Shown here in pieces: positions 1 to 62,500 of a stretch of 64,000 bases of DNA (its first letter is position 1; every line of letters starts with the position of its first letter). A model generated the notes under the pieces. That model was not told where the DNA came from. It saw only the letters and a program-made list of their open reading frames with translations, and made no database searches. This DNA is from Takakia lepidozioides (Eukaryota > Plantae > Bryophyta): the NCBI GenBank assembly GCA_030704615.1, contig CM060732.1, forward strand, positions 82,956,001 to 83,020,000. Reading direction: 5' to 3'. The translations under genes were made by a program, and so were the position numbers.

Positions 1-502
1 GTCCACCTCTATGAGAAAGCAAATAAGCTACCTTTCGACAAAAAGAGGCTCCAAAACAATGGAGAAGTCTAGCCGTCATCCACTGACAGTTTGGGTGACT
101 TGGACAAGACCACGAGTTTCCAAACCACTTCATAAGTAGACTGCACGGGACCTCCGGAAGGAACAGGGGGCAAAAGGACAAAACTGACCCTGACTTCACC
201 TAGGTGCAAATCAGAATGTTTGTGCACATGATATGGTGGGTGACCAACCACAATTTTACTAACCCCTTTTCAGCAGAGCGGAGACTCTAATTTGCGGGTC
301 ACTCATGCACCCTGATTGAACAAAGATCATAAGGCTGTAGATGAGCCAACCAAAGAACAAGGGATTGTTGGGAACATAGGATGCAGGAATTCTGAGTTTT
401 GTTTTCAATTGTCCATAATTGAGTCAATGTATAGAGCTGCAGAGACATGGCACAATCAATAATAGTTTGAAGTAAGGTAAAAATGTGGCTTACAGTACAA
501 AC

Positions 503-3500
503 CTCTGATCCATAAATGGGCTCAGGTCCAGCCACTCCTGGAATGCTACATGGCCGCTCAGCTTGCTCAACCGCCCACGCATGTCCTGTGCAAACCTCTT
601 CAAATGCACAGTCAGTATTGGTGGCGCTTTACTAATGAGAAACCTCTTTGTGGCATCCCGTTTCACCGTGACTTTTGAGGGTTCCTCACCCCCTTTCCGG
701 CTTCGGGATCTCTCTGCCTTCTGAGATTTTGAGCGCGCACCATTTGCGGTGGTGAAATCTCCTGAAAGAAAGGGCACCCCCCCTCTTGGATGCAGATTCG
801 TTCTCTCCAATTGGTCCACATTGTTTGGTATACTGGGAACCACTGCATCTGTGTCTGACTTCAGAGTGTTTTCCAGCCTAATACCATTTGAAATTGACTC
901 AACAGTGGGAGCTGTAAGAGTGGGAACCATGGCCAGAGAAGTTGCTTTCTCTGAATGCTTCTCCCGTTCAGTTAACTCTGATGAATTTCTCACTGCTCGC
1001 CCAACCTGTGTAGGCATGCCATTGTTTTCATCTTTCAGCAACAGCTCCCTTTTGCTGGCTCTCTCCTGCCGATATCCTAGAACTAGCCCAATCGCATCAT
1101 CAGCAGCCTTTTTCACTTTTGATTTTTCGTCATCCGGTTGGACTAAGCAACAACCCTCTCTCGCATCTTCAGCAGATGCATTTTCTGAGGTCAACGGAAC
1201 CTCCACCAGTTCCCAAGAATCATGCACCTGCTCACCCGCTCCACCATTTCTAGAACCAATCCCATCTCCCCTGTTTTTCACTCCTGTTGCCTCTGCCTCA
1301 CAATCAGGGAGGATTTCTTCTGCTGGAGGTTGACAGCCAGTTGTTTGTCCACTGTCAATGAGTGATGTGGCCGAACTATTCCTGACTGTAACCCCATCTG
1401 CTAAGTCCTCCCAATCATTTGTGACAGCTTTGCACAAGGCATTCTCCTTACGTCCATTTCCCTTCGACTTGCTAGACCCAGCCTTTGCATCCCCCCGTGG
1501 CTTCCCATCCTTCCCTCCAGCACTGACTGTTGCCTGACTAGGAGTTGAGCAACTTGCTATCTCTCCTTTGGAAGACTTTCTTCTTGAGCATTCATTGGCT
1601 TTCCCATCTGAAATATCTTCACCCAGATTCCGAGTTGACAAATTCATCCCGCTTCCAAATGCTTTTTCCAGTCCTATCGCACTATTACAAGGCCACATGC
1701 CACCACTGATCTCTGGCAACTTCTCCATTACAATTTGCATATCACCCTTATGATGATCAAGTACTTCTGATGTCACAATCAGATCAGCCCCACCGCTCTC
1801 ATCAGCAAGGCTTTTATTTGTAGGTTGATGTTGTGCATTTAACACAGATTCTTGACTTGTAGAATCCACACCCAGGAGAAGGAGGTCTGCTTGATTTGAA
1901 CCTGCCATCTTATCTTGCAACTGACGAGAGCATTTCTCACATTCCCAACCATTGTCCCCTGACAGAAGCTCTGCTCCTGTGAAGTCTAACAGACATCCCT
2001 CCAGTGACATGGTGGAGAACATTCCCTCTTCCCCATCATCTTCCTCCCTCAAACCTAGCCCCCCACCGTTGCTAGTGAAAATAAACTCTTCTCTTTTCCC
2101 CCTGTTGCTTGCAGATGTCTTAAGCTCCAAATAATTATCAGAACCATCCATGTGCATCAAGGAGCCGCTTGCTTCCCGTCTCATGCCCCCTACTTCCCTT
2201 GCAGTAAACACACTTGCCTCTTTTCCTTCAGCAGAGCTACCCTCCTCAAACAGATCGCCAATTCCAAAATCAGGTAGATTATTTTCAGACTTCACACTCG
2301 TTGCCGATTTATCTTTAGGATTGATATTTCTCCCAATTCCGCTACTAGTACCATCTGAATGCAACTCCTTGGCAGACACATCTCCCTCCAAGCACTTGCC
2401 TCTGATGCTTGCACCATTCAGCCCTTTCTCCATCACTGGGAGCTTATCATAGCCTCTCAAGTCCCCTAATAACAACGACGAGGGCCTTGAAGTCATTGTA
2501 TGATGTTGATCTTCCTCTCCCTCTCTAATCCAGATATTGGTCTCATTTGTAGGGCAGGGGCTAGGCCCATATACAACCTCCTCTTCTGCGACACTTGCCC
2601 AACTTTCAGTGCCATTTAGACCGCAACCTTCTCCAGCTGACCCATATGACTCTGCAAGCATGGAGTAGTCAATACCTTGGAAATTGCCTACTGTTTGCTC
2701 CATGTTTGGTTCAATTTCTACTACTGTTAAACCATTCTTACTGCAATCAATGCTCTGTGCTTCAGTTGGCTCAGCCTCAGCAATGGGACTTGAAAGGCTT
2801 GTCACAGGGCAGGTTTCACCAGGGGAGGAAGATAACCCTCCAAGCACTAGCAACTCAGTAGGCTCATCAGAACCCAACTCTGCATTAGAGTCAATGAAAT
2901 CCATCCATGATCCTTCGGCTTCATCTACAGGCTGAAGGTCGTCCTCCTGCACATTCGAGGAGTTCCTGTTGCTATCGGCAGTGACACATATCACACTTGA
3001 GAGGGATGCTTGAGATGTATGATCCTCTGTGCCATTTCCACTCCCTGACTTGGAGGGAGCTGGATCTATGGTATGTGCCTTTATCCAGCCATTGTCATCA
3101 CTGTCATCATTATGCTCATAAGAGGAGTTGGCTATCCTGTCCATTGGACCATATGGAAGACAAATCACTGCTGGACTCGGGTACTGAGTCTCTTCACCAC
3201 CAGAACCCCACGAATTCAAAGTATCTGTCACTCCATTGACTGTCTTTACCTTTTCGGGTGCGTCCAGACCCTTTGCTCCCTTTCCTAGTGCCTGCCCTCT
3301 TTGACTCCGCATTGCAGAAACTGATAATGGCACCTGTTCCCTGCGTGAAATGCCTTTCTTGCCTGGCTGCTTTGAAGGAATTGGCAGGGATAAGTCAAGA
3401 AAGGGCTCGTAGACAACAGATGAATGTTCGCACTCACAGGAACTCACAGTACTTGCAAGCTGCCCACCGAAGACCTGCTCAACAAATGTTTCAGGTTTCT

Positions 3501-4950
3501 TTTTCTCAATTTCCACTCCTGCTTTGTCCTTGAGGCCATCTTGTAAATTCCCACCTGCTTTGTCTCTGAGAAGTGCATCTGGCTCCCCAACCATTGCCAA
3601 CTGACTCAACCCGCCACTTCTTCCAGAACTAGTCCCCTTCCGCAAGCTTTCTTCTTCTGTGTGCAAGCCATCCAGCAAACACCTCAGCAGCTCATGGCTG
3701 TCTTGTTGCTGGAAACCTTTGAAACGTGGAGCCTTCATGGAGATTGCACCAAACAGACCTCTGGGAGTGTATGCACTTCCTATATTGCCGCCAAACGACC
3801 GTGACCTGGTGCTCCTTCTTAACCCACTCAAGACTGTGGGGTCATGGGCAGCTTGGCCAGCGCTGTCAGCAAGTTCATCACTCTTGTCCAGAGGCAAGGG
3901 ATCAATCTCCTGATAGAACTTTCTGAGTGCGGCTGTCAGGGGACCTTCTCGTACGGGGGCCTCCACACTGAAATGCTCCCGAAGTAGATCCACACCCAGC
4001 AAATTTTGCATCACAGAGTTGAAAAAACAGGTGTTGCCCAGGTTCATCAACCCTCTAATCACTCGTCTACTTTTCACGGGCTCAAACGCCACTTCGGCAG
4101 CTAAAGTACTACTCATGTCCGTGGTTTCATCAGGTTTAGATTCAGATGCCCCCTCACCAACAGAGGCCTCCGTCTTAAAATTCCCAGTTTCAGCAGATAA
4201 CTTTTCTTGCACCAGATTTGCTACTTGTTGCAGCAATTGCAGTTTCGAGGGTGTGGCCTCCCCTGCCTCTGACGGAACTGTCCCATCAGTCTCATGCGAG
4301 TTTTCCTCTCGACCATTAGCACTGTAACTGACAGCGACCTTGCAAACCAAGCAACAACAGGCCAGATTGTCCCCGCACTGCATTACCAGGGGATGATCCC
4401 ATTGCCGCGAGTGCTGCCACGCATGTGACACACCAATCCGCTTGATTGAAGGGGCCTCCATCTTCTCGCCGTCGTCCTTGTCATCGGATTGCTGGGACAA
4501 TTGGTTGGCACAAAGGATCGCCCCACAACCAATCTGACCACAAAACAGACAAACCCACAGTTTGTGACCTGACCCCTCGGGCGGAGACTGGCATCCACCC
4601 TTCTTCTTCACAACTTTGCCCTTCCCTTTCTTCTCCTTCTGAATTGGAGAACGAACTTTCCCAACACAGTCATGGCACTGCGAGAGTGCTCCTTTGGAAA
4701 GCTGAACACGCACTTTGTCTACGTTTATCCAATTCTGCAAATGCTTACAACCTGCGTAGTCACTGCTAGGCCTCACCGCTCCGATCCCTGCCTCATCTTC
4801 ATCTCCACCCTCAGGCATCCCCCCTCCATTTAAAGTGGCCAATTGATTCGACAGCATATTCAAAGGCATGGTCACACCAGCGCTTGCCGCCGTTTTCTGC
4901 AGCACACTCGGTAACCCTACGCTGCGTTTTCTCTTCCCCTTTTTGCCCAT
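503..4950 (-). CDS. UBP2: Ubiquitin-specific protease, UBP1/UBP2 (USP16/45-like) with N-terminal ZnF-UBP; first giant exon only, gene continues beyond window start
   Basis: 1519-codon ORF; likely ATG at 4950 (MGKKGKRKR; the ORF track start at 5049 is GTG). ZnF-UBP (CKH..LWVCLFCGQIGCG..SHAWQH), Cys box GLMNLGNTCFFNSVMQNL, QQDSHELLRCLLD, EPFLDLSLPIP, WECEKC, PPILTVHLKRF. Donor AG|GT at 503/502; His box not in window. Confidence 0.92.
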
Positions 4951-6943
4951 CGCTTGTCCCCTATCCCAATGCTGCCCTCCAAAGCAGATCAGTACTCTCT
5001 CAGATTTCTGTGAAATCTGAAATGTGATCAGATTTTGAAGAGAGGGCACGGAAACGATGCAGCTCGCTATGGCCCTAGTGATCCTTCGCAGTGGCCCAAG
5101 CCCTCGGCAGAAGGGAGACGCCGGAAAGCGGTGGGTTGGCAGCCTCTTCTCTCTCCCTACTGCACCGCGCGGCTAACCGTGCGGCGCCATCCCGACCTCC
5201 GCGGAATGTCCTTCAACCGCGCAGTCGACTTCGCGGTTGGTACAGTGATCTGCATGGATCAATGTCTGCCTGCGTGGCAAATTCACCGCACGTGGTACCT
5301 TGAAAATTACTAATAAAAAATGATTAAAGACAGTGTTTTGTTTTTCAAATTTGGAAAATAACAGGAGTGGCTACTGAGTTTTGCAGGAAATAGCCATATT
5401 TTCAGTTCATCCACTTAAGTTTGGACAGAATCATCCTCATCTGTACTTTCATCCATGTATATCATCCACTCTAGGCGAATTCATCCTCAGTTTTTTTTTT
5501 TTTTGGAGATTTCATCCATGAGAAAATAGGGAATTTACGAATTTACGACAGATGCGATTTGTTTTTGTTGTTTTTCTTAAAAACTTTCGCCAGAAATAAA
5601 GAACAATTTAGAAGATCGTACGTCGGCCTCGTAGTTATTCTCATCGCACAGACCGCATTGCAGTCTCTTTCTCGCATTCTCGAAACGTGAACAACTGTGT
5701 CATCTGCCCTAATCTGACAGGCAGGAGATTTGTGCTGCAGGGCCATGCACGCGTGGCGATGGTGCCACCGATGAGGCTGTCACGCTAACTTTGCGGAAGA
5801 AGGACTTGTACTAGAGTTACGGCACTTTTAAGTGGAAATTTCTGATTTTCTCATGCAATTCCGCGGAGAGGAAGCTGCTGACTGGCTATTGATAGTTATG
5901 AGGAGGTTGTCAGTGTAGAAGGTTGCATTTGGCTACAGATCCGATGGAAGCGCATTGGGAGCGATCTTGGAGTTTCTTGCTGGAAGCTGCCCGTTTGTCG
6001 TTGAAGATCAGCGTTAGTTAGTAGCTTGCCTGTTCTTTTCACGTTGAAGCGGGCCGGGGCCTTTGTCTCTGGATATCGGAGTATATTGTAATCTGTAGCT
6101 TGTTATATTCGAATCTGGAATAATTGAAAACCGCAGTTCCGTGTTTGTTTGGTTAATGTCAGTAGCCGCCGTATGTAATTGAAGATTCTTGTCCTGAAAT
6201 TGATTGAACCCGTACATGTACGAAGAGTTGTGGAGTCGTGGGGAAGAATTGACGTGCCGCAAGCAATCGAGCTACAGTTTTTAGCTAGATTCCTCACTTT
6301 GTGTCAAGCAACTGTGCACTCGAAGTTTCTGTGAGAGAATGTGGGAATGCTACATACGAGCTTGTAAGATTTAAGGTCTGATTGTAGGCTACCTTTTATT
6401 TCTTGAAGTGGAGCCTAGATCTGCACATTTATGTATTGTTGGAAGCGAGGTCAGTTCCTTGTTTCTAGGTGGCCTGAATTCAGAGTATGATCCATTTCCG
6501 GTGTGAGATGAAGTTGCAAATACGTTTCTTGTTGGTCGTTTTGCAATTGTAGGAACTCTTTGCTTCTCATGACCAAGCAAGCTGCTTGAAACTGTACTAA
6601 AGTACGCTCGTGAGAAGGTGGCTTCCAAATTTGAAATTCAATCGTCCTGTCACTGTGAGCAAAATTAAATTCTGTGTGTTGCTGAGCGACACTTCATCGA
6701 ACATCTCCTTGTAATAGCTTCAGGATGTTTCAAGGAACATGAGTGAAAGCTTTAAGGTAAGACACCTTTCAGAAAGAGAGGGACATTGAGAAAGAACGAA
6801 ACCGTATAACGTCCACGGGCCCCGAGGGTTCAGGTGAAAAACTAGAGAGAGAGACAGAGGTTCTTCAGCTTGCTGCTTTTGTAAGGGAGGGAGGGCGGCA
6901 CGTTGCAAAGTGTTTCTTGAAAACGAGCTCAGAATTGAGAGCG

Positions 6944-12900: not shown

Positions 12901-15774
12901 TGAGAGAGGAAACAAAAACCAGAGCCAGAGATAAAAACTATTGTTTGAGTGATTGTCTAAGGGTGAGTGCCTCGTGCAGGTAAGCTGCCTTTCTCTACAG
13001 AGGAAGGAAAGGAAAGGCAAGGAAGTTCAATATCCAGTGGTTTACAGAGCAGACTGGTCTACAGACAGAAAGAGAGAGAAATGAAATGAAATGAAATGGT
13101 GCTTTATAACGTCCGCGGAAAGCTCATAGAGCTTATGGGACAAAATGGAAGGAAGAACATGAGAGAAAATAGGAAAACCAGAGTCAGAGAAAAGAACTAT
13201 TCGAGTGATTGTCTAAGGGTGAATGCCTAAGGGTGAGAGAGAGAAGAAATATATAGAGATTTATTACATCCATGGGTCCCTGAGGGCCTATGGAACAATT
13301 GTACTCATAAGACGTTGTTTGCCGTAGCCTTGTGGCCATTGACCCCGCGCCCAGTTTGAGCGGGAACAAAAGGGACAGAACCTACCTCTGTCAGGGGCTG
13401 ACGTTGGTAGTGTGACTTACCATCATATATAGAATTAATCCGGGTTTTCCAGATATCCTCTAGAAATCCCTTCACACAAGCATCAATCTGCTGTGTGTGA
13501 TTTGCCCAAAAACTAGGCCTCAGGAGGGCCTGGGCTTTTGGCTCAGCCTCGAGACTTTCAAAGTTGTTAAACAGGGGTACAGGCACAATTCCCTTGATAG
13601 AATTGAAGAGAGCGTCTCTTTGGTGAGAGACAGTGTATCAGAAAGTGAATACTGTCTTCAGATTGCCCACACAGCGGGCAATTGCACTCTCCCTTTCCTC
13701 TCTGCTTCTGTTTGCTGTTCAAAGGTAGGCTTCCTGCCCTGAGTTTAAATTTCAGTCTAGTGCCGAGAGTGGGTAGACCCTTGAGGTCATCCAAGATGTC
13801 CTCCCCCATGTCACTGACTGGAAACAAGTTCAGGGATTTATGGAACAATGTGCAATAACAAGGAAATCGACATCAAAAGACTTAGATTTCCCCAAAGAGG
13901 ACCTTCATGCTGTTTTCGAAAAGCTAAAGTAGCTGCTGGGATGACGAATGAAACCAACCAACTCCCACCACAAACGAGAGAGTATGAGGGGTTCCATGTC
14001 GATCTGATGATGTCTTTTGTTGACCAAGTCAAGAAAGAACTTTATGAAGCCCAGGGAAGCTCAAAGGGCTTATGGGACAACGAAAGAATGTAACTTTATC
14101 ATGACCACAGGGAGCCCCAAATGACCATGCATGAGATGATATGTTGCAGGCGTTTGTAAGTGAGTATGCAGTGACAGGGTCTGATTCTGGAAGGGGCACC
14201 TTATTGGCAGCGTTAGCAGAAGGCGCATTCCTCATTGGCCTAGAGATCAACAGGTCTGTCATAAGACCATGGCTATGAGGGCCTAGCACTTTTACAATGT
14301 CAAGTTCTAGATGTGTGAGGTTAGTTTGCAAATAATGTTCCTGTTCTACCAGGAAAGAACACTTTGATATAGTGTGGTGGTGGTGTGACCAGTGATGTCG
14401 TGGAGATGGCAAGCTATGCACCTCTCTTTGTGAATGATAATGACCAAAAGTAAAGCCTCCAACCCGATTGAAGATTCACAGTTTGCTCTTAGCTGGTTGA
14501 CCTTCAGGTGCAGTTTGTGCGCAGAAGTCATATTGTTGTTTTCTATCTTCATTCATCTTGCATAAGAATTGCTGAAGTAATAGACTTGGGTGGACCACAG
14601 CTATGTAAAGCTGGGGGATATGCCCTTGTCTAATTTAAACAGTTTGTTTCAGACCTAACAAAGAAATGTTATTCACAGCAAATACTGTGCTTTGAACAAC
14701 AGATGGAATCCCGACGCAATTGTATTCAACTCTTGGCAACAGTATGGGACGCCCAGTTACTGGGTTCAGCAAGTCTTCAAACATTCCAATGGCGCCGACC
14801 TCTTACCCTTCTCAGTTCAGGCTGAAAATGGCACAAGTACCTCAGAACTGGCACTATCAGTCATCCGCAGACATAATCAGTCCAATGACTTGGACTTCTT
14901 GGTCATAAAGGTTGGCTGTCTTTGTTGGCCTTTCTATTTTGTTGTGCTTTGCCACTTTCCACCACTGAAATCTTATGTTGTCGGTTGGACCAGCCAGAGG
15001 ATGCCGTTGGTTCTGAGAGCACAAAGCAGGGTCCCTTCTAAGAGTGGTGCATATGGGGGGCTGTGATCCAGGCAGTGAATTATGGAAAGGACTCACTTCG
15101 TCTGCGTCTCACAGTAGATGGGGTGCCCTCTGATAGCTTTCAGGTGTCAGACTCAACTATTCTAACACTAACCTCCGACCATCTGTTGGACGAAAACTCC
15201 TTCGACATCCCTGAGAAGGTAACAATCTAACAATGCAACATTTTGACATACAGGGTTAAATTCGTGACCAGAATCTGAGGGGCTCTCTATTCTCTCCTTT
15301 GTCAGCCAGTATAGTGTGACCGTTCATAGAATCCTGGTTAGTTTGTGGGCCAACTGAAATACATGTAGCTTGGGTAGATATGATATTTGATTCAATGAGG
15401 CCAAAAGAAAATGATATCTCTGATCAAAACTAATAGCTGTTGTGTACCACAGCAGAGCTGCTGCAATAATCATTACATCAGTTTTGAGTAACTTGAATGT
15501 CTCTTTAATGCCACAAATCTAGCACTCCCACATGTTGGCTAAGGCTATTGGTATTGGGAAAACTGGAAATAGTGCTGAGCTATACATGTTCTGAAGAGTC
15601 TAGCACAGAAAAGAATGTTACATAAGACAAAGTTCTCATTCTTTGTCTGCATTTCAGGTGGTGCCCAAGAACAGCGTGCTTGCCAATCCAGGAACAGATA
15701 TGGTGATAGTACTACCTGCCTTCTCTATTGTCGCTGTAGAACTGGGGCTGATTGTGGGTCGTGCAGTTATGTAA
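6944..15774 (+). CDS. ASD1: Alpha-L-arabinofuranosidase, GH51, secreted; 17 exons
   Basis: Exons 6944-7096, 7564-7618, 7819-8030, 8531-8652, 8873-9026, 9394-9463, 10239-10384, 10671-10716, 11889-11941, 12118-12262, 12348-12466, 12695-12766, 14150-14253, 14393-14449, 14703-14910, 15072-15218, 15658-15774; all GT-AG and phase-consistent. Signal peptide, FGIFFEEINHAG, RFPGGCYVEG, IAIGNED (acid/base), AFVSEYA (nucleophile), MASYAPLF. Confidence 0.95.
10762..11347. mobile_element. LINE reverse-transcriptase fragment, internally inverted and deleted, in intron 8 of the GH51 gene
   Basis: + strand 10762-10978: ISSSEIVEAIEHLNGYKAGGPDGIVNELIKHGG..LFNLIWKTEMIP. - strand 11347-10979: WRQGVIVNLYKKGDREEPGNYRGITLLN..QAGF / PLLFNVFIN..LMFADD. 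Confidence 0.9.
12831..12972 (-). mobile_element. Short LINE 3'-end copy with (ATTTC)n tail
   Basis: First ~63 bp are identical to 13089-13151 (GAAATGAAATGGTGCTTTATAACGTCCGCGGAAAGCTCATAGAGCTTATGGGACAAAATGGAA); similarity continues to GTCTAAGGGTGA. Confidence 0.8.
13078..13836 (-). mobile_element. 5'-truncated LINE (ORF2 C-terminus with CxxC..E..H..C finger, 3' UTR, (ATTTC)4 tail) in intron 12 of the GH51 gene
   Basis: KFKLRAGSLPLNSKQKQRGKGECNCPLCGQSEDSIHFLIHC...VKGFLEDIWKTR; highly similar copy at 26810-27292. Confidence 0.88.
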
Positions 15775-24720: not shown

Positions 24721-26139
24721 TTATCACCTTCCAAGCACCTTCTGTGGCCGGAGACTGATGTGTACACAGATATACAGCCTGACTATCACATGCACCGCTG
24801 CTGCGCTGAGATGGGCAAAGGACACAATAAGTAGAGTAAATCGTGTTTGGATGACCCATCTTCCTGACAAGCAAGCTATATGGCCATGTTACTGAGATGG
24901 AATCCATGGCTTCCTTTGATACTGGACGTCTTTCCTTTGCATTTGAGTCCGGGTCAACAGGAATGTTTATTTCGGAAAAAGGCATTCATGCGGTGGTGAG
25001 ATAAGCGAGTAGCCTATCTTGGGCTCTGACCCGGAAGGCGTTGCACGGATTGATCTGAGAATTTCATTTCTCTATCTTCCAATTCTATCCGGCCAATCCA
25101 CACTATGTCGTACCTAGAATATTGTCCACTTTTAAGACACACGCAAAATATGCCTGTAACAGCTGAGATTCTAGGTTGTGGTGTTTGAGCTGGGATTGGA
25201 CCCCACACATAACAGCATTCATGAGTATTAAAATGAAAGTGTTCCTTACATCATCAGAACAACATGGGATCCTGCCAAACCCAAGTACACATGGAACAGG
25301 GTCCACATGGACATGCAACTGCAAGTGTTTCCTGAGGAAATGGGATTTTTTTACACTCCTAGGGGATCAGCTTAGGATCACAAAGTGAATGCCACCATTT
25401 GTGGTGACAAACATGTCTTGGAGGGTGATTGCATCATAAGCAGGTCACATTCCTGTAATTCATTTTGCACTGTCAGCATCTAAGTCTGCTAGTTCAACTA
25501 TTAGCCTCAATTCAAACGTAGAAAGTTTACAGTTTATGTTGGAAATCTTATACATATATGCAAGTGAATTCTCAAGGATACCCTCAGTACAAATACATAA
25601 TAGTCAAACTGTGTTTCCATAATTTACAAACACTGTGAAAGCTAGTTACTTATGAGCCTGCAGTTCTCCTCTTTGAAAACTGGACTAGATGGTGGTAACA
25701 ACAGAGCAGGTGCTAAGCCTCATGCTCATCATAAAGATTTATGGTTAAACAGTCATGACAGTTTGTTATGTAGTAGGAGTATTTAATATTCCAGAGGCAC
25801 TGGGAAGCTAGAAGAGCAGATGCAAGAAACGACTTTGGCACCAAATTGTCTCTGCCTTTCCAAGATTCATTTCTAAGATATTCCACAAACCAGAGGCGTT
25901 TGAGTATACCCTCTAGACAATCACCACTAGTAAGACACCATGCTTCCATAATAACGTCTTGAGAAGAGAGGTGCTACCTATACGCATATGTGCATGAAAC
26001 CTGAAATGGCAAATGGCACATCTAAACCTAGTAACTTCAGCTCCCAAACCCTCATGTCCAGAATTACCCCATGGTTGAATGGAGCAAGAATAAACTACAT
26101 ATAATCAGCTCAATCAAGGATAGGTCAAACCCAGCTCCT

Positions 26140-29100
26140 CTATTTGTTTTGTGCCTCCTTCAGTCTATCTTTAAGCGTGGCAAGCCTTCCAGAACTGGGG
26201 AGGTTGAGTGCCATCAATGCTCTCCGCACTGCCTGAACATCCATTTCTTCAATTTGCTCCGCCGACAGGGCCCCTGATAATGACTTGGGCAGTGGGGGGG
26301 GTGCAGGCTCTGAGCCCCCGAGAATCCGGGGTGGTGCTTTCCAAGGTATCCTCTTCCTTGCCTGCAAAACCCCATCATGTAACTTCTCTGTCATGTGCAA
26401 CTCATTTGGCCACTAGCAGGGAGAATCTCGTTTGCACCAAAAATTTGATCAACTAACTTCATGAAGCCGACACGGGTTACCTCACTGACGAGTTGTTCCA
26501 ACTCTTTATAGGAGGGCTGTGCCCCAAGAACTCCAATCACTTCGCTTGTCCCATCCCATGCCATTAGGTGCACCTGTGTCCAACCATCCACACCACAACC
26601 CTTGATCCTTCATGAGTTCCTGGTCACCCACATGCACTTGAAAACATCCAACTGCAAGTCTCACGCGCCAGCGCATAGAATACATGCTGTCATTCATCCA
26701 ACGATTTGTGCCAGGCTTCAGCAGCAACGTTTCCTCTGTAACCTTACTGAGCTGCGCCTCCATTTTCTTAGTCTCTCAAGGACGTCTGAGAGAGAGAGGG
26801 GGAGAGAATGTACTCATGACCTCTGTAACCTACCTTTGTCAGGGGCTGACGCCGGTAGTAAGACTTACCTTGGAACAAACAATTGATCCAGGTTTTCCAG
26901 ATATCCTGTAGAAATCCCTTTACACAAGCATCAACCTGCTGTGTGTGGTTTGCCCAATAACTAGGCCCCAAAAGGGCCTGGGCTTTTGGCTCAGCCTCGA
27001 GACTTTCAAAGTTGGTAAACAGAGGTACAGGCACAATGCCCTTGATAGATTTGACGAGAGCGTCTCTCTGGTGAGAGAACCCCGGACAATGAATCCGAAA
27101 ATTAACATTGTGTTCAGGTTGCCCACACAACGGGCAATTGCACTCTCCCTTTCCTCTCTGCTTCTGTTTGCTGTTCAAAGGTAGGCTTCCCGCCCTGAGG
27201 TTAAATTTCAGTCTAGTGCCGCGAGTGGGTAGACCCTTGAGGTCATCCATGATGTCCTCCCCCATGTCACAGACTGGAAACAAGTTCAGGGAAGTTTTCT
27301 GCCTAACTTCATGAGAGAGGGAGAGAAAGAGGGAGAGAGGGGTCTAGATAGCCGAACTTGCAGGTACACTGGAGAATGATTTGCCTTCTGATAAGCATAC
27401 TTACTTGCCAGTCACTAGGGTAGCATTTCAAAATTCGCACAACCCCACCAGAGCTAGAGGTGACATTGGAAGCTTCCCCCACCCGCTGCTCTATGAGTGT
27501 GTAGGTGTTTTCAAATGTGTCCAAGAACTCCTCAGCCTGTCTGCCACCACAACAGCTATTACAAAGTGCTATTTGATACAGTGAGGACAGCAATACGATC
27601 CTTTGCTCACTATCACGGTCCAAATCAGGGAGAAGTCCTACATGATGTCTTGGAGGACAGTAAAAACCAGTGCCCACCTTTGTTGCCCATGTGTGGAAGT
27701 GGTTCTTTCCTAAAATGCCAAAATGAAAGTTGTGGCCAGAATGATGGTAATGCAGGAGACATGCAACAAAAGTGCAAAGTGCAAACCCTCAAGTTATTAC
27801 CTTTTCCAAGGACCAAAGCCGAAATCTGACACAATTTGGCCTGCTGACCGCCACTGCGGGTTGACTATCAGCAATGGTCTGCTCTCGTCACTGCTTGCTA
27901 GTGACCTCACCTGCCTCAAGCCAGGACAACCACAATTCAGCATGGCAACATGTAAAGAAATGGGAAGCATTTGAGGAGCGAGGGAAAGGGCAGAATGGAT
28001 GGACCTGCACAAGGGGCCAGGGAGAGGGAGGAAAAGAGTCTGCCACCAAATGGACGTGGTTGCACAGGCAGAAGAACTTTTCCTTCAAACTATGTAGCCA
28101 TGGGGGAAAGTGACTTCTCTAAGACTGAAATGTTTTGCTGTTACCTGGTTCAGCGTCTCTGAAATGGGGAACACAATAGCAGCTATGCTCTTGTCTGCAG
28201 GATAGAGGAGGCCTACTGGATCCATCTCGTTATCCTTTTCCCCAATCCGCCGGGTTACGACTTCAGTTTTCTCTTCTGTGGATCCCATATCCTTGAATAT
28301 ACCAGCCACCATCTTTGCACATGCTGCATACTCTTCCCTTATTCCACAGGGATAATCCCTGCATTGAGAAAGAAAACCAAAGGAGTGGAAGCCTCAAACA
28401 TAAGGTCACTGGTTTTAGCGGAAACCGCTTTTCAAGGGACCCTCTAGGATGGTCTCAAGTGTTGCTTGGGAGGGACAATTAGTTGAGAGCTTTACATGGG
28501 GTTGCAGAAATGAGCCTAACTAGTCTGAATGTGACACAGAGCAGTTGAAGTGTCAATATATCATGACTGAATCAAAGTAGCATTACAGCTGCTGGCCTTG
28601 ATAGACTACATTGCCACCCCTTGCAGTCAAAGGAAAAATTCTTACAGACAAGATTGGACCTGGGTTCAGTATCAAGGTAGTTGAATTGTCGTTGATCAAC
28701 TGGTAGCAAAAGCTGCAGCCGTTGCCGCTTCTTGCCATCTGCCAGTGCTCTTTGTACAGCAGCCCTTGACTATGAATACAACACCATTTAATTTAGATGG
28801 GGTGTAGATTTGACCACAGCATAAAGAAAATCCAAGCATGGACAGATGACCTTAATGACCACACAAAAGGGTAGGCTGATGGTGTGGAAGACAAACAATA
28901 AAAGAACTCGGCAGGCCCTCCGAACTTGGTTTGCAATGGCCAAGTATCAAATATGTCTCCAACCGGTGTTCCCCTATGAACAATTTTGTCGCTCCAGAGT
29001 TTTGATTGTGCACATGCCGAAAGCCCTCAGGGGTTCCAGGGACAGGGCAAATCTAGTGCAAGAAGCAATCAAACTTCTCATATTTAGGCAAGCCGGGCCA

Positions 29101-29517
29101 TACCATTGACCTAGTGTACACGAGTTTCAACTCCAGTTCATGTCCTTATCCAGAAACCACAGAAAGCTAATCCATTCTAACCTGATCTATTGCTTCTTCC
29201 ATGGTCTGAGGATTAGGCCACTGCTGTGTATCTGCCACCAATGTATTCGCCCCCTCTCCCTTCACAGCCACAACTTCTGACTCCCACTTTACAAGCTTCA
29301 TTTGAGATAATATTTGCCAGGCCACCACTTTCTGGCCCTTCAAGTGATGGAAGCCTTGCCTCCAACAAACTCCGCGCCTTGGATTAAGAGAGCTCAAAGC
29401 ACTTGTCGAGACTCCTGTGATTGCACAGGGCATGAATAGTGACTCACTATGGGTGAGTGAAGATTCTGTCCATGTGCATGAGATTGATGTACCAGCCACG
29501 CCCAAAGCTGCTGCCAT
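26140..29517 (-). CDS. DUF1995-family (LPA3-like) protein with putative plastid transit peptide and C-terminal SAP-like domain; 7 exons, 406 aa
   Basis: Exons 29517-29182, 28769-28660, 28358-28145, 27910-27801, 27540-27405, 26573-26481, 26361-26140 (1221 nt, all GT-AG, in phase, no internal stops). PQTMEEAIDQSRAAVQRALADGKKR, RPLLIVNPQW, RILKCYPSDWQVH, PSYKELE; C-terminal MDVQAVRRALMALNLPSSGRLATLKDRL. Confidence 0.85.
26810..27292 (-). mobile_element. 5'-truncated LINE ORF2 C-terminus in intron 5 of the DUF1995 gene
   Basis: 171-aa ORF highly similar to the 13305-13848 ORFs; GA-rich tracts on both flanks. Confidence 0.88.
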
Positions 29518-31322
29518 CGCTCAGTACTTGCTAGTTTCACTCTAACGAAGAGCACCAGTAACCAACCTGACACCAACCAAAGCTGAGATCAGGGAGCATA
29601 ATTGCCTCATAAGGAGAAACTTATGAGGAAAATGCCTTTGCGCACACCAAAGCAGGCGGTCATAGAAGTTGATATTCAAAGCCGAACATGTGATTCAAGT
29701 TCACTGGTTGTAACACCCACAAAAATGGGTCGCGCAATCCAGAGGAGATTCTTGCCTGACCAGCAAGTCGAAATACTGCAGGAGTAGGAAAGCTAAATTC
29801 TAAAGTGCTTTGGGCTCTCATTTCGTAATCTCAAAATATCTCCACTGCAAGCAGAAACCCAAATCTAGATTGGCGAACCAATCAAACTCGGGAAGGAGCA
29901 GTGGATTGCAAGGATATACATGGCTGCAGTACTATCAATCCACTTTCCAACGCCAATGAAAAAATGTCCAATTCTAAAGAGTCAAATGGAAAACACCCGC
30001 ACGGTACCTGAAGAACAGAATGCAGCTGTTTATGTGTCAAGTCTTACATGCAGCCACGCTGAAGCAACCGCACCACTACAAACACTGCATTCCTCCATAA
30101 GCCCTACTTTCGCCTACAACACCGTACACATCTATGTTGGTGAACTACAGATGAAAATTTCCCAGATATTCGAAAGAGAGATGGATGTCTCACACCAAGC
30201 TTCAGCTGTGGTTGAGCTATGGCGTTTGAAGGAGAAGCGAGAGAATATGCACTATGGATCCCCTGGAAAAACAATGGATGAGATGGGGAGGACAAGAATA
30301 GTTGCCATGTGTAGTGCAGTGGCTGGCTGTCAAGATACTTGCAATTCCCTTGCAGCAATGTGGGGTAATAAGTAATAGGAGGGCAGCAGATGAATCCGCA
30401 ATACAGTCACAAATGAGCAACACTTTCCATATGTTCCTTTTTTGCGGTTGTGTGATTAGCATTGCATTATGTGAAGGCTGCTTAACTTAACTCTAGTGGC
30501 CTCATTGGTTTCACTTCAACACAAAGTTTTCAATTGACTCTCAACGGAATCCAAAGCTGCACCATGTAGCATCTACTGAAGATCTTGTGCTCTACCACAT
30601 GGCATGTCCTGTATCAAAACCTAACAGGTTTTAACGATCATCTCACAATGTAAATCAGAAATTTCCACAGTTAGCAGTAAAGAAAAGCTTGTCATCACAG
30701 TGGTGCAATTTGTGTAGATGAACCCCTGACGAGGTGTTTTAAGATGCCGGGGTTCTTGAGATAAGAATTTTCTTAGCAACAAAAAGAATCTACAAGCGGG
30801 AAATCGCTTTCCCACCAACTAGACTCTAAATATATCCTACAACTGATCACCATGAGAGCACCATGCCCAAAGTGCAGGTTAAGCTACAAATATGAGCCTG
30901 AATAAGCTGGACAACTTAAAAGGAGTGATTATCCCCTCTGAATAATAAACAAGCCATGGGTAGGCCCAGCCTTCAGCAGAGTTCTACCAGTGGCTGCTGG
31001 CATAATGGCAGAGGTGTGCTAGTTTCTGTTCTCAGTTGAAGGATGGTAAATCTCTTCTGTGAATGCAGTGTATGAAATGGTAGAGAAAGAGCACGGACAT
31101 ACTGGGCTAGCAGTGTGGTTTCTTGCTCCTCTACGGCCACTTTGCTTTCAGACAAGATGACACCACCATCGGCAGTTGCCTGTGGAGACTGTTATGAACT
31201 GCTAGGTGGCAGGCTGGGCATACATGAAATAAAATCATGTAAAAACTTTGACAAACATCCCTCTGAGCATATATGCTAACTTGATTCGTTAATCATGGAG
31301 CAGGAAGGAGCTGCTGAAAGAC

Positions 31323-59596: not shown

Positions 59597-62500
59597 ATGG
59601 GCAATTCTTTCGGATGCTCTGCATCAGGGGAGAGATTGGTATCTGCTGCTCGTGATGGAGACCTGCAAGAGGCCCAGGCACTGCTGGATTGCAACCCACG
59701 GCTTGCCAAGTATTCCACTTTCGGTGTCCGCAATTCGCCCCTCCATTTTTCAGCAATGCAGGGCCACAACGAGGTACCCTACGTCTAATTATACATAGAA
59801 CTCCCTTACCTCAGATGAGGCTCTGCAGATGACAGTATTAGCTGTGATAAAATGGGAACAGGTTGGTGTCAATCAAGGTACTCGATGTGTCTCATGTGTA
59901 TATGACTGTCACCTGCACAATAACCATGGGAATTGATACATAATAAACAAGTGGCACTTGTGTTAAATTTTTGTTGAAAGTATTTGGGAGAAGCTAAAGT
60001 ATGAATCTCACTTTTTGTATCCGCAAGTCCCAAGGTTCTGTCTCTGCTGCCCTTACTTGCTAGTTAGCATGGAAAACATGGGGTGGCAGGACCACCGTCC
60101 AATTCTCCTTCGGTGTCATCACGTTTTCAATGGTATCTTTACCTGGTTTGGCATTCAAGAAGCAACCTTTTCAGATACGACATGGAGATTCCCTGCAAAC
60201 AGAATCCTCCTACCAATTATGTAATCCTGAAGGTGCTGTGCAATATTTTGTGGACTAACTGTGATGGCAGCTGCGATTGTTTGATAATTTTAGACATTGT
60301 CTTCACTTTTAACCACAAAACTGTACACTGCCATGTCTTGCCTTTCAGATTGTCACACTGCTGCTCGAGTGTGGAGTTGAAGTCAATACCCGAAATTACT
60401 GTGGACAGGTACTTCTTAACAGGCTTACAGCTCATCACTCTTCATGTAGAAAGTAAAAAACTGTCAATGGTGTGTTTGGCCACCTGGGATAGGGTGGGAC
60501 CTGTGCGGGAGGGTCATGAAAGAAATAGGTCTCCAAAGACCCCTATTATTGGATAATGTTGGGAAGAACTCCAGATGTCCTTTAAGGAATCCACTGAGCC
60601 TGAATAACTGGGACAAAAACTTCCCATTCCTCAAGGCTGGTTGGGCACCAGGTCTCTTAGTATGTCACCGCAGGCCAGGTGCATATGAAAGGTTTCAAAT
60701 GAGTGGGAGAGAGATATTGACTCGAGGGTGTTGAGTGCATTAGTGCCTGGGAGGCACATGCTGTTGGACCCAGTGTGTAATGCGTGAGAGCCAGGGATAA
60801 ATTTGGAGAGTGGTTCCAGCTTAGCTCTCTCCCAATTTTAAGCTTTCTGAAGTACCAAGAGGTGTTTCTATGACCATTTGCCAGTACTTTCTCTAATTTA
60901 AAAAAACGCCCTAATGGGAGGTTGCATTCAAGTGGCATAAAGTTCTCTCTTTCCTTGTTACCTCAGAATACACATCTGCTGTGTAGGAGGGCAACTCCAA
61001 CCATGCTAAAACTCTAGATTTCATTCAGCTTTTGGTGCCCAGACGGAGCATGACAGCATGATCTAGAACAGCTAACGCAGCTGTTCGGGTGAGTTTGGCA
61101 TACCACCCCTGAGTTCTCGACACAATGAGTTCAAGGTCAGATGGTACGGTCAGTTGGATCACATAGTCCCGGCACCTCTGTCCACCAACTTCCAAAATCT
61201 CAAGGCTGAGCTTACAGCCTTGGCCCTGTTGGGGTCTAATTGCTGGGTAGCTCACACACTTCAGATTAATGCTTGTGTGCAGGGATTTCTAGAGGAAATG
61301 TGGAAGCCCAAACCCATTGTTTATACCATATGTAACCCCCCCAACTACACTAGCCCCTCAAAAAGGTAGTGTCTGTTCCCTCTTGTTCTGCCCAAACTGA
61401 GTTGGGATCTATGGCCACAAGGCTATGGTAAACAATGTCTCATGAGTACATCCCCCCCCCCAAACCCCCGCGCCGTCCCCACTTCCTTACCAGAGGCCCT
61501 AAGGTATGAGGCCCCAATTGCTACAAGCATACCTACATGAGGTTTTTGTCCTTCCAAGTAACTTTTGGAAACTTCTGATACGCCCTGTTGGTTCTCTTGT
61601 TTTTGGGCCCTCTGGGCTCCCATGGACATATAGATCTTGATTCTACCCTCTTGAATTTCTTTTTCTATTTTCCTTTCCCCCTCTCTCTCCGTTTCTGTCA
61701 TGTGTGTGCTTGGCTCTGGGCATATGAGGCTTCTGCTGAAAGCCCTGTTTTGGAACATGCAGACAGCTTTGATGCAGGCGTGTCGATACGGACATTGGGA
61801 GGTGGTTCAGACGCTGTTACTATACAAGGCAAATGTAAGCAAGTTTCTCCAAAATCCCCAACGGCAACTTCTATGACTCACCTCAACAAAATTTGAACAC
61901 TATATGCAAGGTTTTCTGAGGTCTCCTACTGGGATCTCCAAAGATGCAATCATCTGAAACCTTTGACTTTATTCGGGCACTTTTCAGCTTGCAGGGGGGC
62001 AGATGAGTTCTTGATTTAGAAGGGTTGTTTCTGTTATTAGATGTCTTGCATTCACATGAGTAGCAAATGCTTGTGCTTCAGATTGTGGAGAGGTTGTCAT
62101 TAATTGGGAGAGTTGCAGACCTATGCTCTAAGCACCTCTAAAGTTGGGATGGGCATTTAACAGAGGAACACCCTATGATAGCTGCATCCATCAAGCATCC
62201 TTTGCTTCTTTCCCAAAGGGACCTGATCAGCAGGCGCCTGTAATTAAGCCGGTGGTGCGGTTTCTGTATCAGGACTATGTTAGAAAACCACACGGGACTT
62301 CTCGCTGGCTTTTGTTATAATTGCCACAGGCTTCTGGCCTGACAGCGATGCGGTGAAGTTCCCCAGGGGCTTCTAATTATAGATTCTAATGCAGATACTG
62401 TTCACCTGGCGCCTGACGGCTTTGCAGCGCTACCTGATTTGGGAGTTTTCCAAATAGCATTCAGGTACTGTGGGTTGTTCTAGGATATCTATATCCACAA

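Follow-up and report, generated by a model that had tools for sequence, protein, structure and literature searches.

Gene structure and transcript evidence

The stretch of DNA analyzed here, 64,000 nucleotides of the moss Takakia lepidozioides (assembly GCA_030704615.1, contig CM060732.1, positions 82,956,001 to 83,020,000; hereafter the window), contains a gene on its minus strand, at positions 29517-26140, with seven coding exons that amount to 1218 nucleotides or 406 codons. It is an expressed nuclear moss gene, and its 406-residue product is made up of four parts, namely an unconserved presequence rich in serine and threonine, an α/β core of the DUF1995 family, an invariant proline-rich stretch and a C-terminal SAP domain.

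Transcript evidence was taken from the assembled contigs of two public runs from separate studies (X1 and X2), which were placed on positions 26000-29700 of the window. Together with the predicted introns and the domain searches described below, they yielded the following features (confidence of predicted structures is given as predicted local distance difference test, pLDDT):

30008..30276 (upper end approximate), minus strand: non-coding 5′ exon, ending in ...TCAG and followed by GTACCG
29567..30007, minus strand: intron of the 5′ untranslated region (5′UTR), GT..AG, 441 nucleotides
29182..29566, minus strand: exon with the start codon; coding part 29517-29182, 112 codons; presequence and start of the DUF1995 core (NPQTMEEAIDQ); joint 28769|29182 in X1
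28660..28769, minus strand: coding exon 2; 36 codons and 2 nucleotides; joint 28358|28660 in X1 and X2
28145..28358, minus strand: coding exon 3; 1 nucleotide and 71 codons; subfamily-specific part of the core; joint 27910|28145 in both runs
27801..27910, minus strand: coding exon 4; NPQW...SDFGFGPW signature; joint 27540|27801 in both runs
27405..27540, minus strand: coding exon 5; joint 26573|27405 in both runs
26481..26573, minus strand: coding exon 6; end of the DUF1995 core; 74% identity to residues 290-320 of the Sphagnum protein P0022
26140..26361, minus strand: coding exon 7; 73 codons (26361-26143) and the stop codon TAG at 26142-26140; 92% identity to the Sphagnum tail
26269..26361, minus strand: proline-rich tail (ARKRIPWKAPPRILGGSEPAPPPLPKSLSGA); low pLDDT
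26146..26268, minus strand: SAP (helix-extended loop-helix) domain; Pfam and predicted fold

The coding part of this layout had been proposed in an earlier note made from the DNA letters alone, and its seven-exon, 406-residue model was borne out. The introns between the coding exons all have GT..AG borders (6/6), the spliced joints in the contigs match the predicted introns exactly (six of six in X1, five of six in X2), and every peptide quoted in that note is present in the exon translations. The joint by which the SAP-like last exon is spliced to exon 6 (26361|26481) was found in contigs of both runs. What had to be added is the non-coding 5′ exon: an X1 contig of 658 letters spans 29182-29570, after which its letters match the window from 30012 on, its placement reaching 29570 because four ambiguous letters (TCAG) occur at both sides of the intron. 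The gene has at least eight exons, with the seven-exon model being its coding part. An in-frame TGA is located two codons 5′ of the ATG, and at the other end the 3′UTR extends below 26140, with an X1 contig covering 26000-26363 and continuing past 26000.

Intron 2 has a weak donor (CAG|GTCCAA at 28660/28659), which both runs use, and the codon position of this intron is common to Sphagnum and Klebsormidium. Other sites were considered and rejected, the RNA joints using 28660|28358: GTAAG at 28645, 14 nucleotides downstream, looks better as a donor but breaks the frame, and the donor GTGGCA at 28617 and other acceptors of exon 3 likewise lead to a stop or to the wrong frame.

Both runs are labelled in the record just as ‘RNA?’ and unspliced contigs are present too, which would be compatible with the fusion of the two domains being an artefact, either of a SAP exon belonging to another transcript or of spliced contigs derived from a processed DNA copy. 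This explanation is extremely improbable, however, given that the exon 6-7 joint occurs in two studies, that the same layout and the same boundary of the last exon are annotated in Sphagnum, that core and SAP are united in a single protein in about 70 relatives, and that depth is higher in exons than in introns. We argue that X1 and X2 are RNA with some unspliced material, because their contigs are spliced and because of this difference in depth.

Apart from these joints, one X1 contig of low depth connects 26649 and 28666 via 32 foreign letters with non-canonical ends (AA..GT), and is probably chimeric and not an alternative splice form. At two intronic positions the runs differ from the assembly, namely at 27055 (G in both runs, C in the assembly) and at 28943 (C, with A in the assembly), which are probably strain differences. 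A 151-residue open reading frame (ORF) starting with ATG lies on the plus strand at 29920-30375, opposite the non-coding 5′ exon.

DUF1995 core

Pfam and phmmer scans of the window gene were run exon by exon, and the Sphagnum jensenii orthologue P0022 was used as full-length stand-in. The Pfam DUF1995 profile (PF09353) was matched by exon 2 (profile positions 12-34, 18.2 bits), exon 4 (100-131, 17.4 bits) and exon 5 (136-170, 26.2 bits against a cut-off of 26), with the three matches being colinear along the profile, and the Sphagnum orthologue matched positions 1-196 of its 197 with 114.7 bits, so that the core had been assigned correctly from the letters. Exon 4 contains the signature LLIVNPQW plus VSDFGFGPW, whose residues Q, W, S, D, F, and G do not vary among 59 relatives. 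A phmmer search with exon 3 against 1.84 billion representatives yielded 19 relatives with best identities of 72-73%, three of which are full-length proteins with the same C-terminal tail.

The predicted structure of P0022 (pLDDT 80 overall, above 90 in the core) comprises, in this order, a disordered presequence, an α/β core (residues 93-324) and the tail. Matches of the core to central domains of acetyl-CoA carboxylase and to P-loop/RecA-like ATPases (Z 4.3-5.5) were too weak and scattered for a fold assignment. A P-loop motif was not noticed in the core sequences by eye, no formal motif search having been made.

C-terminal SAP domain

Exon 7 of the window gene matched the Pfam SAP profile (PF02037) at residues 40-70 with 15.9 bits (E 0.01), below the cut-off of 23.9 bits. 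The orthologous tails of three algal members, which align in register with it, score above this cut-off (P0071, 26.8 bits; P0097, 24.5; P0108, 24.7), the one of Klebsormidium reaches 23.3 bits, and at E ≤ 0.1 the profile matches 12 of the 20 members of one alignment of relatives (A1). Searching the sequences of the PDB with a profile of 22 tails placed the SAP domains of MKL1 and ERI1/3′hExo first. The family profile is needed for this, as a single-sequence phmmer search with exon 7 against the same sequences yielded nothing even at E 10.

AlphaFold2, run on exon 7 with the family alignment, predicted helices at residues 42-51 and 60-72 with the loop LNLPSSGR and a pLDDT of about 85. The best Foldseek matches of the tail are mostly SAP domains (3′hExo, MKL1, E1B-AP5, DEK, Hcc-1, Tho1, Ku70). 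The VIA all-against-all alignment with residues 350-393 of Sphagnum P0022 comprised Rho-N, E1B-AP5, PIAS1, Hcc-1, DEK, SLX4, Ku70, MKL1, SF3B2, and LEM (Z 5.0-6.8). Top match there was Rho-N (Z 6.8, root-mean-square deviation 1.1 over 42 residues); Pfam puts the tail in SAP, not in Rho_N. Judged by profiles and predicted folds, we regard the SAP assignment as established for the family and, via that family, for the window copy, because the scores of orthologues above the cut-off, the PDB profile search and the fold matches agree. The SAP-like last exon proposed in the earlier note can be kept with this qualification.

Invariant residues of exon 7 are R46, L49, P55, G58, and R66, among them the glycine of the loop (G58) and, with L49 and R66, positions of the L..L / L..RL pattern of SAP domains. 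The helix-loop-helix has a net charge of +5 in the window copy and of +3 to +6 in all members compared (22/22).

Presequence and proline-rich stretch

When mean pairwise identities among 16 embryophytes were calculated by region, the presequence was found to be the least conserved (19%), followed by SAP (64%) and core (67%), with the proline-rich stretch at 81%. The first 70 residues of the window protein contain 16 serines or threonines and two acidic residues (D or E), and the corresponding region is disordered in the Sphagnum model. A variable, disordered N-terminal extension precedes the core in every full-length orthologue, and in chlorophytes this extension is rich in alanine and arginine, as is typical of algal transit peptides. 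From this composition we infer that the presequence directs the protein into the plastid.

It might be objected that the protein resides, at least in part, outside the plastid and that SAP directs it to the nucleus or the mitochondria, with the N-terminus being no transit peptide: SAP domains are mostly nuclear, and the nature of the unconserved presequence is deduced from composition only. We regard this as quite improbable, since the described DUF1995 proteins are plastidial. LPA3 and AT5G27560, the latter unstudied (PMC12062884), are listed as chloroplast proteins (PMC8448359, PMC12062884), and diatom members of the family are chloroplast-targeted (PMC7596299). The N-terminal extensions of the orthologues, including the Ala/Arg-rich ones of chlorophytes, point in the same direction.

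The proline-rich stretch PWKAPPR.LGGSEPAPPPLPKSLS is the best-conserved region of the protein, above core and SAP, and probably constitutes a docking motif for a partner. Its motif SEPxPPP is found in embryophytes and in one transcriptome sequence (P0038, species unnamed); chlorophytes possess an acidic linker instead. Within the stretch, PPPLP resembles a docking motif.

Distribution and age of the fusion

Relatives were collected by word-indexed searches, in which candidates were prefiltered on shared 5-residue words and 8000 of them were scored, using a full-length relative and the alignments A1 and A4 as queries. Named orthologues stem from mosses (Sphagnum, Ceratodon), liverworts (Marchantia, Calypogeia, Riccia), lycophytes (Selaginella, Diphasiastrum), ferns (Ceratopteris, Adiantum) and gymnosperms (Cryptomeria, Ginkgo), as well as from the streptophyte alga Klebsormidium and the chlorophytes Chlorella, Micractinium, Myrmecia, Botryococcus, Chromochloris, Bryopsis, Tetraselmis, and Picocystis. 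Among the fetched sequences, the closest relative is the one of Sphagnum, with about 72% identity across the seven exons. The same layout as in the window protein, with nothing essential being different, is present in Sphagnum jensenii P0022, Ceratodon purpureus KC19_5G050400, Marchantia polymorpha AXG93_2035s1710, Klebsormidium nitens KFL_001640220, Cryptomeria japonica SUGI_0563590 and Chlorella vulgaris D9Q98_009774. A local hidden Markov model of the tail found it in 70 of 89 fetched proteins of at least 270 residues.

Part of this is already annotated automatically: UniRef names the proteins of Marchantia, Klebsormidium, Riccia, and Chlorella vulgaris ‘SAP domain-containing protein’, and the combination PF02037+PF09353 is precomputed. 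The literature searched yielded no paper containing both ‘DUF1995’ and ‘SAP domain’. The two-domain architecture is old, widespread and automatically catalogued, and no study of it was found. The statement of the earlier note that no characterized DUF1995-SAP architecture is known stands to this extent; the architecture itself is not novel, being widespread in Viridiplantae and labelled by automatic annotation.

Despite the abundance of angiosperm proteomes in the database, no angiosperm protein was among the matches of the word-indexed searches with their 8000 scored candidates. Between gymnosperm and moss members, identity is about 60%. It is likely, judging from these searches, that the subfamily was lost in angiosperms. 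Likewise, no match was named Chlamydomonas or Volvox, an absence that is not proven by these searches as many matches are unnamed. No link to the Chlamydomonas mutant genes Cre06.g281800 (LSAR4) and Cre08.g369000 emerged from these matches. A pattern scan confirmed no bacterial or archaeal relatives, which carries little weight as the pattern is subfamily-specific.

In a tree built from the cores with SAP removed, 12 SAP-less proteins of Closterium, Ostreobium, Elliptochloris, one Bryopsis paralogue and several unnamed metagenome or transcriptome proteins form one clade with 100% support, and the orthologues listed above group together apart from it. Outside this clade, the chlorophyte and streptophyte proteins all carry SAP except for seven scattered rows, two of which are faulty models (one truncated, one frameshifted), with several others sitting on very long branches. 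The simplest reading of the tree is one ancient fusion, which would predate the split of chlorophytes and streptophytes because members of both groups carry SAP.

The earlier note had taken the placement of linker and SAP on one terminal exon as consistent with a gain by exon shuffling. The Sphagnum gene has the identical seven coding exons with the same intron at the boundary of core and tail, and Klebsormidium has the boundary intron at the same place and a tail interrupted by two more introns; Chlorella vulgaris has not kept the boundary intron, and its last exon begins about ten residues earlier. With SAP carried by chlorophyte and streptophyte members alike, such a gain can no longer be treated as a traceable event: exon shuffling is neither shown nor excluded by these comparisons, and it would not have been a recent event.

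Comparison with known plastid proteins and proposed role

Of the characterized DUF1995 proteins, LPA3 (At1g73060/Cre03.g184550) is a plastidial photosystem II assembly factor (PMC8448359). Its likeness to the window protein is the DUF1995 domain, that is, the Pfam family alone, and no SAP domain is described for it in the papers. Chlamydomonas mutants of lpa3 and of Cre06.g281800 (LSAR4) have Fv/Fm values near zero, and both of these DUF1995 proteins are needed for photosystem II (PMC8448359, PMC9110296). The paralogues of the SAP-less clade (Closterium, Bryopsis BSKO_02146, Ostreobium, Elliptochloris) share the NPQW...SDFG core, yet lack SAP. Two paralogous models of this clade from Ostreobium quekettii (P0093, P0094) display N-terminal CCHC zinc knuckles and basic repeats, which, if the gene models are right, would mean that DUF1995 was joined to a nucleic-acid-binding module a second time, independently.

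Eukaryote-type SAP domains are also found in the plastid proteins pTAC3/PAP3 and CreCNS/PEPS1, whose SAP regions bind DNA without sequence preference (PMC4758235; bioRxiv 10.64898/2026.06.23.732312). Klebsormidium pTAC3 binds DNA, and the four SAP domains of CreCNS bind DNA and suffice for nucleoid localization (PMC4758235). CreCNS is identical to PEPS1, a subunit of the Chlamydomonas plastid RNA polymerase (bioRxiv 10.64898/2026.06.23.732312). Unlike the window protein with its single C-terminal SAP, CreCNS is a 280 kDa protein with four N-terminal SAP domains, and neither it nor pTAC3 contains DUF1995. No relative of pTAC3 or CNS was among the matches of any search, the likeness to the window protein being confined to the SAP fold. 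The window protein may thus act like pTAC3 and CreCNS but is no member of their group. A further likeness is offered by the plastid protein RHON1 (At1g06190), in which specific plastid RNAs are bound by the C-terminal helix-extended-helix (Rho-N) motif (PMC3458557); it lacks DUF1995 and is described as vascular-plant-specific.

The reading that we favor, with a probability of about 0.45, is that of a plastid DUF1995 factor tethered to plastid nucleic acid by its SAP domain. The presequence would take the protein into the plastid, where the DUF1995 core would work in biogenesis or assembly in a manner like that of its paralogue LPA3, which serves photosystem II. The basic SAP domain would hold the protein on plastid nucleic acid, either on nucleoid DNA with the transcription machinery or on an RNA, so that the core would act where plastid-encoded subunits are made, and the proline-rich stretch would dock a partner. 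Such a nucleic-acid tether is plausible because pTAC3, CreCNS/PEPS1, and RHON1 are precedents.

Several results weigh against this reading. Besides the score of exon 7 below the SAP cut-off, the fold searches of this small domain gave weak statistics (E ≥ 0.6, Z ≤ 6.8), and an acidic helix N-terminal to SAP leaves the 43-residue module with a net charge of about +1. The fold matches of the tail include protein-binding SAP modules, namely those of the pairs PIAS1-p53, SLX4-MUS81, and MANF/CDNF-BiP. As for the core, Foldseek and VIA-align searches against solved structures yielded no convincing relative, just scattered weak α/β matches.

Some of these points would fit a different role of the same protein in the same place, in which SAP and the proline-rich stretch make no contact with nucleic acid. 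They would instead dock proteins such as a chaperone, a protease adaptor or an assembly factor, or would regulate the core by folding back on it. The protein-binding fold matches and the acidic helix, which offsets much of the SAP charge, speak for it, the high conservation of the proline-rich stretch is as expected of a linear docking motif, and the higher SAP pLDDT in the full-length model (about 90, as against about 85 for exon 7 by itself) may reflect packing. Nevertheless, we consider such a role somewhat unlikely: the helix-loop-helix itself is basic throughout the family, the invariant R46 and R66 are typical of DNA- or RNA-binding SAP domains, and the plastid proteins with SAP or helix-extended-helix motifs tested so far bind DNA or RNA (PMC4758235, PMC3458557).

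Extending the preferred nucleic-acid tether by one step, the DUF1995-SAP protein might physically couple plastid gene expression to the biogenesis of photosystems or thylakoids, with SAP sitting on nucleoid DNA, on the plastid RNA polymerase or on a specific plastid RNA, the core handling the nascent product and PPPLP recruiting a third partner. We hold this extension to be rather unlikely. If it were true, a rewiring of the coupling would be marked by the loss in angiosperms, which have given up other plastid functions as well.

Photosystem II of Chlamydomonas depends on DUF1995 proteins (LPA3 and Cre06.g281800), and the subfamily described here joins this domain to a type of domain that in plastids binds nucleoid DNA (pTAC3, CreCNS/PEPS1) or, in the related motif of RHON1, RNA, which provides a testable handle on the site of action of a DUF1995 domain. 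The apparent lack of the subfamily in angiosperms and of any match named Chlamydomonas would explain why it escaped study. When the plastid SAP proteins of Klebsormidium and Marchantia were surveyed, only pTAC3 was reported (PMC4758235), so that a second SAP protein appears to have been overlooked there. The subfamily is present in mosses and in Marchantia, which are transformable.

Other features of the window

Intron 5 of the gene contains a repeat with further copies in the window, at 13379-13836 (89%) and at 61162-61305 (77%):

26744..27363: dispersed repeat in intron 5, outside the protein; contig depth in the thousands in both runs

On the minus strand, the repeat contains a 171-residue ORF (26768-27283), for which no Pfam match was obtained. 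The ORF displays a CxxC...H...C pattern, which resembles the zinc-binding tail of plant non-LTR reverse transcriptases. At a distance from the DUF1995-SAP gene, positions 490-5049 on the minus strand are occupied by a single ORF of 1519 residues with ubiquitin carboxyl-terminal hydrolase (UCH) and zf-UBP domains, which represents part of a ubiquitin-specific protease gene that has no introns over this length.

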